NCBI GenBank assembly: GCA_904063045.1
Contig: CAJFCJ010000015.1
Location: 992,001-1,056,000, forward strand
Direction of reading: 5' to 3'
DNA: 64,000 nt
Source of the DNA: Dimorphilus gyrociliatus
Lineage: Eukaryota; Animalia; Annelida
The position numbers and the translations under genes were made by a program. Positions 8,624-35,936 of this stretch are shown here, in pieces. The notes under the pieces were generated by a model. The model was given only the letters and a program-made list of their open reading frames with translations, was not told the origin of the DNA and did not search any database. Numbering within the stretch: the first letter of the stretch is position 1; each line of letters opens with the position of its first letter.

Positions 8624-9673
8624 TCAAGTTTGGGATATTTCGCTTGGATATATCCTTGATCTTCTCCTCGTAAAATTGTATATTAAATCAGTGATACTAC
8701 TTCTGCTCCTTTCTGAACGATTCGGAGTAAATTGTGGATCGTAACCAGAGAATGTTGTCATACTTGAAGAGCGTGAGTCGATTTCTTGGCAGTCGCACGA
8801 TTTAATAAATTTTCTATACAATTTCCCAAAAGCTGGTCGAAAGTCTGAAGTTTTAAAAGCGAATATCCATGGATTAACGGCACTGCATATCAAAGATAAT
8901 ACTGATAATAGCATGGACATGTTATTAGAGATTGGTCCAATCTCTGTAACTTGTAAAATATCAATAATTCTAAATGGACACCAAAAAAAGATATATACAG
9001 ATAAAAGGATTGTTAATGCTTTAATACATTTCCTATTTCTAGAACGTTGACGGGCTTCAAGTGGTCCTAAAACAGCTGATTCTACGGCTTCTATAGCTCT
9101 TAACTGAACGGTAACAATTTTCCATATTCGAAAATATACTACAATAAGTACGATAACTGGAGGAATAAATAGAAGATTAAGCGAAATTACAAGGAGAAGG
9201 TCGTTTTCTTTACAGTTATTAGTTAATTTTGAGTAAATGAAAGGCAAAAAAGATAAAGTAATGGCATAAATCCAACAGAAAATAGTTACAATTATAACAC
9301 GAAAAGTTGAAACTACTTGACTGTACGTTAAAGGTGATTTTATAGCCGTATAACGGTCGAAGGCAACTGCCGCAACATTCGTTATACTCAACCCACAAAT
9401 AATTCTGGAAATTGTCAAGGCCAGAGAACAAAGTTTATTCATTTCTTCGTCATTTTCTTTTAGGTAGAATATAAGGGCGACTGGTGCGATTAATCCTATA
9501 CACATATCCGTTACTGCTAACGAAACTATTGAATAATTACTTGTAGTTCGAATCTTGTGAAAGTATGCCATTGAAATTAATACTAAAGAATTCGAGAAGA
9601 ATAATAACATTAATAATAGACCACCGATAGCAACTAAAAAGGAAGAAGCAGAGAACCAAGATGATGATGCCAT
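8624..9673 (-). CDS. Class A GPCR, single coding exon (adenosine/biogenic-amine-receptor-like orphan)
   Basis: 349 aa ORF with 7 hydrophobic segments: LAVTD, FDRY, FFWCPF, NPWIF. An acceptor (ttaccag) lies 6 nt before the ATG and a candidate donor lies near 9845, suggesting a 5'UTR intron. Confidence 0.9.
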   Translation of the reverse strand: MASSSWFSASSFLVAIGGLLLMLLFFSNSLVLISMAYFHKIRTTSNYSIVSLAVTDMCIGLIAPVALIFYLKENDEEMNKLCSLALTISRIICGLSITNVAAVAFDRYTAIKSPLTYSQVVSTFRVIIVTIFCWIYAITLSFLPFIYSKLTNNCKENDLLLVISLNLLFIPPVIVLIVVYFRIWKIVTVQLRAIEAVESAVLGPLEARQRSRNRKCIKALTILLSVYIFFWCPFRIIDILQVTEIGPISNNMSMLLSVLSLICSAVNPWIFAFKTSDFRPAFGKLYRKFIKSCDCQEIDSRSSSMTTFSGYDPQFTPNRSERSRSSITDLIYNFTRRRSRIYPSEISQT

Positions 9674-10294
9674 TGTAAACTGGTAAATATATATTTTATT
9701 TTCAATATTTCGATATATTCATTCCATAGATTTCAATCTATTAAAAAAGTTAAAACATGTATTTTACATAAAATTAGGAAAGAAATAAGAAATTAAATAT
9801 AATGTATAAAGCAAAAAACAAAAATTATCACATAATTAATAGACCTGGACTACAACGAAGCGACGAGTGACAGTTGAATTATGAAAGAAAAACTATTCTT
9901 CCGAGTACGCCTTTGATGAAGCGCCTCCAGTCTCCTACGTTATTATTGATCTGAGATGTAATATATATTCAATAAAGCCGACTCTCAATGCAATTAACAA
10001 GATTTTTATTGTATAGAATCCTAGAAATTTTCTTTTTTCGGTTTAGAAAAGATAATTAAATATGGTATACAGTTGAAAGGAAAAAGACCAGGGGAAATAG
10101 ATAGGGAGGAAGAAAGGAGAGAGTGAAGAAATAGAATGAATAGCAATAACTTATGTAGTGACGCCGTTTCTATATAATAATATAATTGTATTTAATACTT
10201 AAACTGTATTGTATATATATATATATATTATATAACTTATTAATGAGCATTTCTGAAATTAATAAAGGTTAGATTCATTGTTTTATCATAAATG

Positions 10295-13200
10295 TTATGT
10301 CACTGAATAAAGTGGACTTCCATCTTTTAAACTTACACTTTTTGTTGCCGACATTTTTATATCTGGAAGATGAATAGCCTCTCCTTCAGGCTTATTGGCT
10401 TTATATACTGGATTAATAAAGTCATTACTAACTGACAAACTACTATCTTCAGTAAAATCTTGTGTACTATTTCTAATTGGAGTTGTTCCGTCACTTCGGC
10501 TATAATTCTTCAAGTTCTGCCATTTTCTATTCAGATTCTCACCAACTTCTGGTTTAAAGCGAATTATTGCTAAAATTATAATTACAATAAGGACTAAGCA
10601 GATGATAACTCCAATTGCTATAGCTGCTTTTGAACCACTTGATAAACCTTTTCTATTAGTTGGCTGTACCTGATCTATCGGCTTCGCTAAAAATAAATAG
10701 TGCAGTGTTAATTATTAAGGAATTAGAGCAAATTTCCAATATTACTTGATAATTTTGTTGTTTGAGTTATACGAGTTGTCGATAATTTAAAGGTAGTCGT
10801 TCTTATACTTGTTGTAGTTGGCTTTTTCGTTGTAGTTGGTCGTTTTGTTGTTGTACGAGTTGTAGAAATTATAGTAGTTGTCTTTTTAGGAGTTGTTGGA
10901 GTTGTTGCCTTTTTCGTTGTAGTTTGAGTTGTTGAGACTGTTGTCTTCTTTGGCGTTGTTGGAGTCGTTGGCTTTGAAGTAGTCGTTTTTATTGTAGTCG
11001 AAGTCGGTAGAGTTGTGGTTTTCGTTGTAGGTGTTGTTGCAGATGTTTGATCTTGTGTAGTAAAATCCATAGATAAAGTTGTAGCTTTAGTCACTAAAGG
11101 TGTCGGCCTTGGATCAGTTTTATTTGGTCCAGAAATATCTGAAACACAATAGGAATGGAATAAAATTCTAGGAAACGTTATCTCATACATTCATCATCCG
11201 TGTAAAATCTCCATTGAGCGTCTTCTGACGTAAATCTAATAACGTTTACATCGTGAACTTTATTACTAGGAATTTTCCAATCTATTAAGTATCCATCTGA
11301 ATTTCCTTGCACTTGTAGCCTGTACTCAACGCTTTGAAGAGTTTGAGTAAAGTTCCAATTAATTGTAAAATTCTTCCACTTTTGACAATCTAAGAAATTT
11401 CCAATTATAGAATCTTCGTTGCGTCCTCCAATACTTGAACGTACGGCTAATCGTGAATTTCCATTGATGCCAATAGCCACTTCGTAAGTATTATTTTGTA
11501 AGTTGTTCTCATAGTTTGCTAAAGCTACGAAAGCATTTTTGCAACCTTTAATTGAAGCGATAATATTATTTCTTCCGCTAACTCGAACTGTTTCTTGATT
11601 GCTATAAGAGCTTTTGTCGTTGATTGAGAATTGCACATAATTAACTGTAATTATAGTAAATGCTTTAATATATATAATCTGTTTATTACATAATTAGAAC
11701 AAATAGTATACTTACTTTCGCTTCTTGAAGTTGTCCATACAGCATCTGAATTAGTTATCAAATCAGCAGACGTTATAGTTGCGATGTCGTTAGAAAATGA
11801 TAACAGTGACTTTGATGTATACGCTAAAAATAGATTTTGATTAATTTCTCCGTAGCCAATACGTAGTCCTTTAGACCAAGTCATCCACAGGCGTTTTTCT
11901 CCACAAGTGAATAAATTCGGAGTTTGCACTTTCTTGACTTCCGCTAATACATTGTTTTTTCTTACAAAGAGTATACTTTTATGATCAAAAGTATTCAAAA
12001 TAGCTGATGCCATAATATTTGAATCTTTATCGGTAAAAGTAATGTTTGCTTGTGAGCATGTCTTTATTTTTGTTGTTAATGACTTGGTCTTTACTTCGTA
12101 TGGACCACTTTTCTTAGATTTTGATGTTTTAGAAACTAGTTGATCTTCTTCCAGATTGTTTAAATTCCAAATTCCTTCATTATCTTCAGTTTTAACGCTT
12201 ATTGCTCTGACAACAATTGGTGGATAACGGAAGTAATGCTGAACAAATACGTTCGAATTTAAAACACCTCCTTTACCCAAAGTTATCGATTCTTTATCCC
12301 ATTTAATCCATATTGTAGTCGGTATTGGACTATTTAGAATTTTAATATCGAAAGGATAATAAAAACTATCAGCCTGCTCTTTTATCATAAGTGCACTATT
12401 ATCAAAGCTACCGTAAGAAAGTTCATAAGAAGAATTTCCAGAGATACCTTCACCGTTACTCAGAAGAATTATTGCATTCCTTTCAGCCGATACCTTTAAG
12501 ATTGCATAGTTATTTTCAATACTAGCCCAATATCTTGAATAAACTGACGAGTCAGGTGTATGAACAGTAATAGAGTTGACCTTATACTTCTCGAATCGAA
12601 ATTTTCCAGTGCAAATATCTTGACAGGAAGTACTCATGGCAAAGTGAACGCTTCTCACACGTCTTGTCGCATTTCTAAGAGTTATTATCGGCTGAGAAAC
12701 TCCTCGATTTCCTATACCTAATTGAATCTTGTTTTCCTCCCATGACAGCCAGAATGTTTTATATAGCGTATCACTCAGAATATTAGGAGTTTGGTTTTCC
12801 TCTAAATCGGTAGAATTTATACTTCTCCTTATCACGCTTCGTTGATTGTCTTTTCCGATAATGATTTCGTAGGTTGTCGATGGATTTGGTGGAACTACTC
12901 CAACTTCTTCAGCTAGAGCAATGTACGCATCGCTTTTAGCTCTGATTCTAAATTCCAGACTATTTGTTGATGAAATAATCCAACCGTTTTTATATTCTAA
13001 CGTATTTGATGCTATTATTGTGTGAAAGGGTGATATAGATTCTTTATCTATTAACCAATCAGCGTCATTTCTAGTCGATGTTAGAGAAATGGCTTTTATA
13101 TCTCGGACACTTGAGTTGTAATTAAGAATTAAATCACCCCCAACAGACTCTCCTTTTCCCACACTTATCCTAGTCTTCGTCCATTCAATCCAGAACGGCC

Positions 13201-16200: not shown

Positions 16201-19200
16201 GTTTGAAAGTTGACTTCATACTGAATGCTACGTCGTTCATTTTTCTAGATAGTTCAGTATATAATGGCATATCTCTTGGGAAATACCACTTTCCAGTACT
16301 ACCAAATCCTGTTGTGATTCCAACTGATCTTATGGTTTGTTGTCTGTGATTGAACCAAGTTATTATAGTTTTTTTGAAAACTTCTGTTCCTTCGCCCACT
16401 TGAACTATGTTATCTCTCCAAGATATCCAAAAAGCTTTGGGCGTGGTTTCATTTAATATTCTCGGGGTTTGTTTAGATCTAACAGCTGGTTGCATTATTC
16501 CCGGTCTTATCTCTGTTTTTGTATTCTTTGCTCCGCCTATTAAGATTTCATATGCTGCGATCTCGTAGTCTCCGGGTATTGATGTTAAAGCTAGGAATGC
16601 ATCATTTTTAGCCTGGACAAAGAAAGTGATATATTCTTCAGACACGGTAAAACTACTTTTTCCGTAAAGATAAATGTTGGGACTTTGAAGCTCAAGATAT
16701 TCACCCTCTGGTAGAATAGGCGTTACTGGAGGTAAAGTTGGAGGAAGTTGAGAAGTAGAATTTTCGAATAAAAATTCCCATGACGCATCAACATTGCTAA
16801 TCATCGAGAGACCGTTAACGTTCGCCTGTTCACCTAAAAATGCTTCAATAACCTTATTATCTCCAGGTTCTTCGCTTCTGCCTAATCTTATATTGGCCCC
16901 ATCCCATGATATCCAAATAGGTATAAATTGATCGCATTCTAAGAACCTTTCATAATTCACTGATTTAATTAGAGTAAGATCTTTGAAAACTTGAACTTGA
17001 TTATCATAGCCCATTCTCACTGAATAAGTCAGGGTTTTTGTTTCACCTGGAATAGTTGACAAAGATATTTGAGCTTCCGAACAAGCTTTTACACCAAATT
17101 GTACGAGTTCTCTGGCTACTCTTGTTACACCAACATACTTTACAAGTTCATTCTTCTTTGTGCTTGTTTGCATCCATCGAATGTCATCTTGAGCTATTTG
17201 CCATCTTCCATCGTTACCAAATCCAGCTGAGAAGGATATGTATGGTATGTTAAGAGAGGCGTTAACGTTATGTGCCATAAAAGGTTCAGAATTATTTTTA
17301 TAGCTTCCAGCTCCAACTGATAGTTCGGAGTTAGAGAATTTTATCCAAAATTTCCTCATTTCATAACAATTTACTATATTTCTAGTTCTTACATGAACAG
17401 CTGTTGAGCCCTGACGCCTTCTTCTAATTTCTGAGAATGTATTTCGCCCACCACCCAATACTATTTCGTACGTGTTTTTATTCGTTACACCTGCTTCCTG
17501 ACTGAGAGCGATGTGGGCATCGTGACAAATTTGAACTCCAAATTCTACATACTCCTTTTGCGGCATGAACCATGTCTTATCATAATTGTATACGTTCGGA
17601 GTGAAAACATCAACAACTTCACCGTAATCTGGACGAATTATTTTCCAGCTGTTATCTATAGGTTTATCTTTTCCAGCTCCCAATGCTATTCCATTTATTG
17701 GAATTATATCATCTTTATCTCTTTTCCAAGAGATAAGTTGATAATTTCCAATTGAAGTACCAAAACCTAACGAAAGATTTTCATCAACCCAGCTCAACCA
17801 GAATGAAGTTTCAGTTAAAGAATTTAATGGATTATTGAAAAATCTTGTCTCCTTTATTTCATTTTTATACGCAATTTCTATTTTACGATTACTGTCAGCT
17901 CCAATGGTGATAGTATAATCCCTTTCTTTTATATTGCCAATAATTGATGCTAAATTCAACTTTGCATATTCATTAGCCTTTACCGAAAAGTAATAGGAAT
18001 CGTATGTTGTTACCCCTAACCAAATACTACCAAAAATTCGATTTTTCCCACCGTACGCCATTAAAAAATTAACTATTTTGAATGAAGGAAAAGCATTATT
18101 TAACTCTAAAAATACACAGTATATTGCAAAATTATTACCGTCGGATGGAAATATTAGCCATCTGGAAGCGTAGGTTTCATATATAGTTTTCAAAATATAT
18201 CCAGTTGCATCCTCAAGACCGAATAAGGTTTTTGCTATTTCATTCTCGTACGGTTCTCCACTGCCCAATCTTATAGAATCTTTATCCCAAGACATCCAGA
18301 ATGTTTTATATCTATTTAAGGCAATAAGTCCTGGAATATTAGCCGTAACGTTGGTAACACCATGAACTTTAATGATTAAGTTATCACTGTTGCTATTTCC
18401 AATAATTGCTTGAGCCAAAGATTGTGTACTGTCCGAAATATTTACTAATTCTATACTCGCTCCTAAATCGGCCTCAAGTTGAAAGATAAGCAAATTTTTA
18501 TTAAACGGAACAATTAATGGACCGTCGTTGTCATTCGTAGTTTGTATTCTATGAACTTCGCCTAAATATTATTAAAAGTTTGCTTTTTAAAATAGGATTA
18601 ATTAGTTAAGATAAGATAAAGATTTTACTGTTAAATTGCATCCATTTAAAGGTGTAACTTGTTGGAGAAGCAAATCTTAGAGCTTTAATGTCCATATTTT
18701 CAGTTGAACGAAATTCTATAACTCTGAATTGAATGTAAAATTCTAATTATTTGAATAATAGTAGTGTTTTTAATAAAGTTACCTTTGTTGTGATACAATT
18801 GTTCCTTTTCCAAAGGAGATAGCGTTGTACTTCCATTCCAACCAGAAATAACGCATTTCATTGCAATCAAGAATACGAGGCGTTGATTGACTAGCAATTG
18901 TTGTACTTTTATCGCTGTGCCGAAGGAATATTGTATATCGATTGGAAGATGTACCTATTCTCAATTCGTAAGTCTGATATCGTAAAATTCCGACAAAAGG
19001 TGCAAATATGATGCTAACTCGGTTACAACTTTTTAATCCAAATACCAATTTAGTCATTGTTGATGGAGTGAACCAACTACCTAAGTCCTTCTCTGCTGTA
19101 GATAAATCCCTTTTAAACGTTATTTCCTGAGCTACTGTTCGCTGTAATTGATAAAATGATATTCTATCCGACTGATCTGAACGTAATTGTGAAAAGAATA

Positions 19201-34200: not shown

Positions 34201-35936
34201 CTTCATCTAATCCTTTACCAAAGGTAATATTTTTATTAGACCAACTTAACCATAGAGATCTATATTTAAAACATTCTAACGCCTTTTCGTTAGTATCTGA
34301 AGACAGATTCTTATATTCCGTATTATTGGCTAAAAACATTAAATCTAGGGATATTTTTCCATTAACAGAGCTAATTTTCAATCGAAACTTTACTTTCTCA
34401 TCTAAAAGTTATTGAGAAAATTTGTAGTTTAGATTATTGATATGTAAATTATCATTAACCTGGTTCATTAAAGAGATCAATTGAAACATTTGTATTACAA
34501 GATCGTATGTCAAATGGAAAGAAAGTCTTATATTGTACATCGATGGATGAACTTGTTGAGATGGTATCCCTATCGGTTTTAATGGTCCATTGATCGCCTA
34601 TAATAGAGAGACGTATAATATTCCAACTAGAGAGAATTAAATTCATAAAAGAAAATCGAACCTCTGGAATCTGGAAAATCCCAAATTGCAGTTTTATTCT
34701 CAGATGAATAGACAGAAACATATTTAGGTTTAAAATCAAAATCTTTCGTCCAACTTAGAATATTTCCTCTTTTGTTTAATGAACCCAATTCAAAAGTACC
34801 TTCTCTACCATTCCAATAGAGATTAAAGTCTCTTTTTGAAAAAATAGAACAATTTAATAACGTACTATAAGAATTAATAGAGTTTAATCTTTACCTATTT
34901 TCATCGCATGATAGAATGTGTGTAGTTGATATAAAAGTATAATCCATAGTTCTATTAAATCTAAATCCGCTTTTCATATTATCCTTTCCAATAATAATTT
35001 CCCTTATACTATTTAATTGATCTTCCTCTTCCGATAATAAAATTAATACATCGCTGCAGGCTTTTACTCTGGACGTATATTAAGAGTTGAATATAGATAG
35101 AAAGTATATTAATATAACCTAAAAAGTTACCTAAAATAGAATGTATGCGTAGTACGTTCAGGAATGAAATTTCTCCATATTGTTTTATATAATGGTCTCT
35201 TTGACCCAGTCTTTAAAAATACTTCCTTTGCTACAAACCAATGTATATATATACATATGTAAATAATTGCTTGTTTTTACCTACTATAGTCTTTAAGAAC
35301 TTTCCATTGTCCATCAGAACCAAAACCAGTATTTAGAGCAACTCCAGCAACTTGAAATTTAATCCCTTCATCAATCATTTTACCTATTTGATTTTTACCG
35401 AATTCACTACCCCTTCCAATAACAAGTGTTTTATTTGACCAAGTAATCCAGTAGGTTAAAAACTTATTCTTATCTAATAAATTAGGAATAAAATCGTTGA
35501 TTGGTTGACTTGTTTCATTTCTCATAAATAGTTTCCTTCCTCTGCTACCGCCAATAATAATTTCGTAATATCTTCCAGTTTTTAACTTGTTAAAATCAGG
35601 ATTTGAGGGAAATAATAAATGAGCATCATTTTCAGCTTTAATTTTAATAACTAGTCTTTCGAAATCAGTTGTAAAGAACGCATAATCGTAGACGTCATCA
35701 TGATTTGGCGTAAAAAATAAATACTCTATTTCTATAACAGATTGAAAAGACAATAAATAAAGGAAGAGATCGTTAAGTATCAATAACTTACCTTTCGAAT
35801 CTTCTTGTCCAAATACTAGATTACCTGTAAGAAATAACAATTTACAAAAGAGAATTAAATCGATAATTAATTGATCTAATTTACTTTTTATTAATACAAA
35901 AAATGAACATAACGCTATTAAAAAGCGTAAAATCAT
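10295..35936 (-). CDS. Giant type I membrane protein: signal peptide, about 45-50 tandem FAMeT-like (Methyltransf_FA) repeats, Thr-rich stalk, TM helix, FxNPxY tail
   Basis: A ~150-aa unit recurs throughout: F.V.AC..A.I.L..YEI.IG...N..S.IR..T..IL.C....FWISW....I..G.G...W.....S...G.W. The best copies (e.g. QAKNDAFLAL..YEILIGGAKNTKTEIR..FWISW..TTGFGSTGKW) match the arthropod FAMeT/CPAMD8 domain. Checked junctions are in frame (35.1-35.9k, 32.9k, 25.6k, 22.7-23.1k, 18.6-18.8k, 14.0k, 13.5k, 11.7k, 11.15k, 10.7k). No internal signal peptide or TM segment was seen. Not every junction was checked, so a split into more than one gene is not formally excluded. Confidence 0.8.
10790..11070 (-). repeat. 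Thr/Lys/Pro-rich mucin-like coding repeat (juxtamembrane stalk of the giant protein)
   Basis: KPTTPTTPKKTTVSTTQTTTKKATTPTTPKKTTTIISTTRTTTKRPTTTKKPTTT contains an internal imperfect duplication. Confidence 0.85.
22728..22783. repeat. Compound (GA)n(GT)n microsatellite in an intron of the giant gene
   Basis: gagagagagtgtgtgtgtgt seen directly. Confidence 0.9.

Follow-up and report, generated by a model that had tools for sequence, protein, structure and literature searches.

A candidate FxNPxY sorting signal in the predicted cytoplasmic tail of a giant PF12248-repeat surface protein of Dimorphilus gyrociliatus

The window analysed here, a stretch of 64,000 nucleotides from the annelid Dimorphilus gyrociliatus, encodes on its minus strand a giant, probably type I surface protein whose last exon carries the hexapeptide FINPVY behind a single transmembrane helix. 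The motif is a candidate sorting signal for PTB adaptors, and the reading preferred here, to which we assign a probability of roughly 0.45, is that it couples a giant lectin-like array to clathrin-mediated uptake or recycling. The protein would run from a probable signal peptide through about 46 Methyltransf_FA (FA, PF12248) domains and a mucin-like stalk to the transmembrane helix and a polar tail of 88 amino acids. Sequences of the FxNPxY type form a type I beta-turn, and the non-phosphorylated FINPVY would adopt a beta-turn of this kind and be bound by a PTB adaptor of the Dab, ARH, Numb or GULP class. The adaptor would in turn link the giant protein to PtdIns(4,5)P2, AP-2 and clathrin, and the receptor, together with whatever the lectin-like array had captured, would be internalised and/or recycled. 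The gene and the parts of its 3′ end are listed by their positions in the window.

10295–35936, minus strand: whole giant gene, leading from a probable signal peptide at 35936 through about 46 PF12248 domains in tandem to the stalk, transmembrane helix and tail
11189–11644, minus strand: exon with the final Methyltransf_FA domain, which shares 47% identity with its orthologue in contig L001
10746–11138, minus strand: Thr/Pro/Lys-rich mucin-like stalk exon
10687–10745, minus strand: 59-nt phase-1 intron, GT..AG on the minus strand, defined by the 10686/10746 joint of the X2 contig
10628–10686, minus strand: predicted extracellular juxtamembrane linker of 19 residues, opening the last exon
10562–10627, minus strand: single transmembrane helix, 22 hydrophobic residues long and with basic R-F-K directly after it, read from the sequence
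10298–10561, minus strand: predicted cytoplasmic tail of 88 amino acids (RFKP...LYSVT), polar and Ser/Thr-rich
10403–10420, minus strand: FINPVY, a [FY]xNPx[YF] motif, tail residues 48–53
10295–10297, minus strand: stop codon of the giant gene, from translation and kept in the mRNA contig

The tail exon is real and expressed. A spliced contig of 20,168 nt from the public run X2 aligns to the window and lacks six introns, all of them canonical and on the minus strand. Among its joints is that of position 10686 to 10746, which connects the tail exon with the exon of the Thr-rich stalk. The same contig is unspliced over 10017–10686, and the stop at 10295 is therefore retained in the mature RNA. 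The window is AT-rich (about 31% GC) and its introns measure 50–71 nt, which fits the published median intron of 66 bp for D. gyrociliatus (PMC7854359).

The last exon of the giant gene (10295–10686, minus strand) encodes the linker, the one transmembrane helix and the tail. Its first two bases finish a codon begun in the preceding exon, and its translation then reads KPIDQVQPTNRKGLSSGSK, the transmembrane helix AAIAIGVIICLVLIVIIILAII, the 88-residue tail from RFKP to LYSVT, and the stop. An initial annotation had reported FINPVY in a tail behind a transmembrane helix, and translation of both positions 10290–10696 and the exact exon bears this out, placing the motif at 10403–10420 of the minus strand within DFINPVYK (10400–10423). 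The tail is shorter than the approximately 95 residues given there, and one letter of the helix had been misread, the sequence being LIVIIILAII rather than LIVLIILAII. The RFK directly after the helix is a basic stop-transfer, and the F of the motif is tail residue 48, which puts the motif 47 residues past the 22-residue helix. Since an ectodomain led by a signal peptide and a mucin stalk precede it, the motif would be exposed to the cytosol; both this topology and the disorder of the tail are predictions from sequence. FINPVY fits the full [FY]xNPx[YF] consensus, its aromatic Phe occupying −5, Asn −3, Pro −2 and Tyr 0. It lies in a tail predicted to be cytosolic, that of a type I membrane protein, and in line with the earlier description it matches the FxNPxY consensus read by the PTB domains of Dab, ARH and Numb (Traub 2003, PMC2173531). 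It is the sole canonical sorting motif in the 88 residues, a scan of the tail for YxxPhi, dileucine, NPF, PPxY and PDZ-ligand motifs having found none. On the same scan, YxxPhi, dileucine and PDZ-ligand readings of the tail were rejected, the C-terminal YSVT included.

With the amino-acid composition of the gene itself, a tail of 88 residues is expected to hold 0.006 NPxY and 3.5e-4 FxNPxY motifs. FINPVY is the only [FY]xNPx[YF] in the 22,143 residues of all stop-to-stop segments of at least 60 amino acids, taken from six frames over the whole window, and the ectodomain of the giant protein, some 7,000 amino acids long, contains no NPxY at all. This is suggestive but short of proof, and such statistics would not settle the matter alone, because the motif was picked post hoc and because a whole proteome of tails is expected to hold about 0.1 to 1 chance FxNPxY, a rough estimate from the per-position rate. 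FINPVY could thus be a chance motif in a fast-evolving disordered tail that has no adaptor partner and acts as a stop-transfer or anchor segment only, an explanation that we regard as somewhat unlikely. The shortness and post hoc selection of the motif, the proteome-wide estimate and the lack of relatives of the tail in any search would all agree with a chance origin, whereas the low expectation for this particular tail and the fit to all six consensus positions, including Phe at −5, speak against it.

A chance origin is also at odds with the conservation seen in a relative represented by contigs of the marine metatranscriptome X1, which are about 94% nucleotide-identical to the window. The differences listed for the FA exon comprise 18 synonymous and 5 nonsynonymous changes. 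Over about 62 codons, the stalk differs by 3 synonymous and 6 nonsynonymous changes, whose ratio is thus reversed, and the 3′UTR directly past the stop has accumulated 3 substitutions and an indel within 13 nt. The visible part of the tail (10298–10410, 38 codons) differs by one synonymous and one nonsynonymous change, the latter M to K at 10353. Because it shows these two differences against a fast-diverging stalk and 3′UTR, the visible tail is constrained about as strongly as the folded FA domains. Within the motif, X1 has the codons for V and Y unchanged, along with two bases of that for P; those for F, I and N (10411–10420) fall within 30 nt of the contig's end, a stretch for which differences are unlisted.

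A deeper orthologue is found in the Logan assemblies SRR23372229, SRR23372216, SRR23372228 and SRR31984834. Identity amounts to 59% in the 1486-aa exon (P0002) and to 47% in the last FA domain, and the exon order is the same. The orthologue contigs L001–L004 all end inside a TTKP stalk repeat; on the other side, the neighbouring GPCR is matched by P0003 and P0004 (81% identity), and contigs L005 and L006 start in a TA repeat just 3′ of the expected stop. The tail exon of the orthologue is out of reach because the contigs break in the stalk repeat and in the TA repeat of the 3′UTR, which flank that exon. The stalk itself (10746–11138, minus strand) evolves much faster than the rest of the gene and forms a near-perfect TTKP tandem repeat in the deeper orthologue (L001, 17090–17283), at which short-read assemblies break.

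Searches with the tail returned no relatives. When the tail exon was compared exhaustively with 1.84 billion representative proteins by phmmer, the single match, P0001, was rejected as spurious because it reflects a tandem repeat, STQDFTHPVY. The transmembrane helix plus tail, used as query in a word search, gave 5 candidates, none of them at E ≤ 10; a scan of JGI metagenomes with the tail matched 177 pattern stretches, none of which was confirmed; and a sequence search of the tail against PDB chains gave nothing relevant. The window's own proteins are absent from the protein collection, and therefore the missing self match is meaningless and the blank tail searches say little about absence.

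The tail had earlier been called an LRP-like trafficking tail. Of this description the six residues FINPVY stand, and the rest of the tail has no relative in the protein, word, PDB or metagenome searches. Since no relative of the tail exon was found, FINPVY would be a short linear motif and not part of a transferred or homologous tail, and the candidate of a homologous LRP tail was rejected for lack of similarity past the six residues. On these searches, none of the LDLR-family tails resembles that of the giant protein beyond the hexapeptide. LDLR (802-FDNPVY), LRP1 (FTNPVYATL) and megalin share with the giant protein a type I topology and an FxNPxY, a class of motif that the PTB domains of Dab2, ARH and Numb read, five of the six residues being identical to those of LDLR. 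The LDLR family is built from LDL-A, EGF and YWTD modules, whereas the giant protein has PF12248 only, with no tail likeness past the motif. The LDLR motif also lies about a dozen residues from the membrane, compared with 47 residues in the giant protein. Tail residues 11–19, NRKWQNLKN (10505–10531, minus strand), may be faintly like [KR]NW[RQ]xKN, with which LDLR and VLDLR tails begin, although this likeness did not emerge from the profile searches.

The ectodomain is composed of one domain family. In Pfam scans of 18 exon ORFs, every large minus-strand exon in 11189–35936 matches PF12248 (Methyltransf_FA) alone, and LDL-A, EGF, Ldl_recept_b and EMI give no matches. In the 57 minus-strand segments, 1.2% of residues are Cys and no 45-aa window reaches 6 of them, from which it follows that LDL-A and EGF modules are absent. 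The initial annotation was thus right in describing an ectodomain without LDL-A, EGF and YWTD modules, since Pfam gives PF12248 only and no such Cys-rich window exists. Membership of the LDL receptor family was rejected because its defining LDL-A, EGF and YWTD modules were looked for and are absent, the ectodomain having no Cys-rich modules. The 1497-aa exon scores 454 bits against a gathering cut-off of 24.2, with 9 PF12248 stretches, and a profile made from the gene's own repeats gives 56 domain matches, which correspond to about 46 domains. The first exon begins with a plausible signal peptide. All protein searches were carried out exon by exon, on separate exons rather than on the joined spliced protein. 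The giant protein is tied to the Methyltransf_FA family by ectodomain repeats that pass the Pfam gathering threshold many times, but described members are either small cytosolic arthropod 'FAMeT' proteins or secreted matrix and adhesive proteins with 1–2 copies, as against about 46 here. A literature search found no paper on a transmembrane PF12248 protein with about 46 copies and an NPxY tail.

One FA domain (17174–17611, minus strand) was modelled with AlphaFold2 from an alignment of 29 of the gene's own repeats, giving a confident model with a pLDDT of 89.6 and a pTM of 0.85. The best fold matches of the model in the PDB are galectins and a GH16 glucanase (TM 0.49–0.57, E about 4e-4; galectins TM 0.52–0.57), and a PDB sequence search with the FA profile gave nothing relevant. 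The FA domain models as a galectin/ConA-like beta-sandwich and not as a methyltransferase fold, a weak fold resemblance that does not imply sugar binding, and on this model the family name 'farnesoic acid O-methyltransferase' looks like a misnomer for an extracellular binding module. The galectin resemblance of the model fits a ligand-capturing array. FA domains are also found in secreted sea-star adhesive (footprint) proteins and in abalone shell matrix, and this occurrence points to an adhesion or matrix role as much as to cargo uptake.

With such a role, FINPVY would dock adhesion or cytoskeletal proteins or would signal recycling, and would be bound by FERM-F3/PTB-like domains of the talin, kindlin, tensin and SNX17 class as in integrin beta tails, and a giant matrix- or cuticle-binding protein would be anchored to actin or returned to the surface. 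This function would suit a protein that forms an extremely long rod, with about 46 domains carried by a mucin stalk, and would agree with the presence of FA domains in adhesive and matrix proteins; NPxY is also the focal-adhesion motif of integrins. Integrin beta tails, however, combine a membrane-proximal NPxY with a distal NxxY below an integrin beta ectodomain, whereas the giant protein has a single NPxY, no second NxxY in its tail, and a PF12248 ectodomain. The tail appears to have no integrin-like membrane-proximal helix motif either. The Phe at −5, by comparison, is a hallmark of Dab/ARH-type endocytic signals (PMC2173531), and we hold docking or recycling of this kind to be quite improbable.

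The presence of an NPxY on a non-LDLR receptor is in itself ordinary and has many precedents. The convergent assembly of an endocytic receptor, as proposed earlier, would be no new principle, as Draper, Sas, APP/Appl and Amnionless all carry NPxY/F on non-LDLR ectodomains. The motif is FDNPVY in Draper, where it binds Ced-6/GULP (PMC3338440), YDNPSY in Sas and YENPTY in APP/Appl (PMC10289811), and FXNPXF in Amnionless (PMC8710305). The earlier interpretation is partly supported, being plausible and ordinary in kind, with an NPxY tail on an unrelated ectodomain well precedented.

Among these precedents, Draper and its relatives CED-1, MEGF10 and Jedi-1 share with the giant protein a non-LDLR ectodomain with an FDNPVY-type motif, which in their case binds Ced-6/GULP. 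The giant protein could be an engulfment receptor of the same kind, its NPxY recruiting GULP/CED-6 so that particles or microbes caught by the lectin-like array are phagocytosed. The near-identical FDNPVY of Draper binds Ced-6 (PMC3338440), Jedi-1 acts via GULP and clathrin (PMC4055271), and a multivalent lectin-like ectodomain would suit particle binding. Draper-type receptors nevertheless have EMI and EGF-type repeats and a YxxL-type tail motif, and the giant protein has neither, with no EMI/EGF ectodomain and no YxxL/ITAM-like second motif in its tail (no Y..[LIMFV]). As the adaptors overlap with those of the proposed signal for uptake or recycling, engulfment, which we rate as very improbable, would differ from it only in cargo and cellular outcome.

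Other systems resemble the giant protein in overall plan. Cubilin–Amnionless (CUBAM) and Drosophila Stranded-at-second (Sas) combine, as the giant protein does, a very large multi-repeat ligand-binding ectodomain with a short tail, and the FXNPXF of Amnionless and the YDNPSY of Sas drive internalisation or Numb PTB binding. Their domains (CUB/EGF and VWC/FN3, respectively) are unrelated to those of the giant protein, and the motif of CUBAM is carried on a separate subunit. Members of the mannose receptor family (MRC1, DEC-205, PLA2R, Endo180) share a design principle with the giant protein: they have tandem lectin-fold domains, one transmembrane helix and a short F-x-N-x-x-Y tail, and undergo constitutive endocytic recycling. 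They contain 8–10 C-type lectin domains compared with about 46 PF12248 domains here, and there is no sequence relationship. FINPVY also fits the FxNxxY of this family.

The giant protein may be the founding example of a new metazoan class of endocytic or scavenger receptor, in which an array of roughly 8,000 residues, made of about 46 'FAMeT' domains with a galectin fold, would bind glycan-bearing ligands or particles to be cleared via an FxNPxY read by Dab, ARH, Numb or GULP. This broader proposal is rather unlikely; if true, it would provide PF12248 with its first cell-biological role, that of a lectin-like cargo binder. Should the motif work, it would provide a simple handle on an otherwise unstudied giant surface protein, and the 'farnesoic acid methyltransferase' domain of marine adhesives and shell matrices would be an extracellular binding module that cells can take up.

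Several observations concern the region downstream of the giant gene. The X2 contig has two plus-strand GT..AG introns, at 9683–9842 and 9958–10016, and therefore points to a plus-strand spliced transcript that overlaps the start of the GPCR gene in antisense and converges on the giant gene at its 3′ end. The plus-strand exon at 9843–9957 has stops in all three frames. Positions 9842–10001 are 100% identical in an X1 contig, with other X1 contigs at about 94%, and the exon is about 90% identical in the deeper relative (L005), where its flanks are about 50% identical. The exon may belong to a conserved element, either a non-coding RNA or part of a UTR; on 9600–10350, Rfam gave no match. The GPCR gene is intron-less and of rhodopsin type, and lies at 8624–9673 on the minus strand, which it shares with the giant gene, 622 nt downstream of the latter. 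The GPCR orthologue, with 81% identity, carries PF00001/PF10320. Contigs L005 and L006, with a conserved intergenic block, suggest that the neighbourhood of the GPCR and giant genes is kept in the relative.
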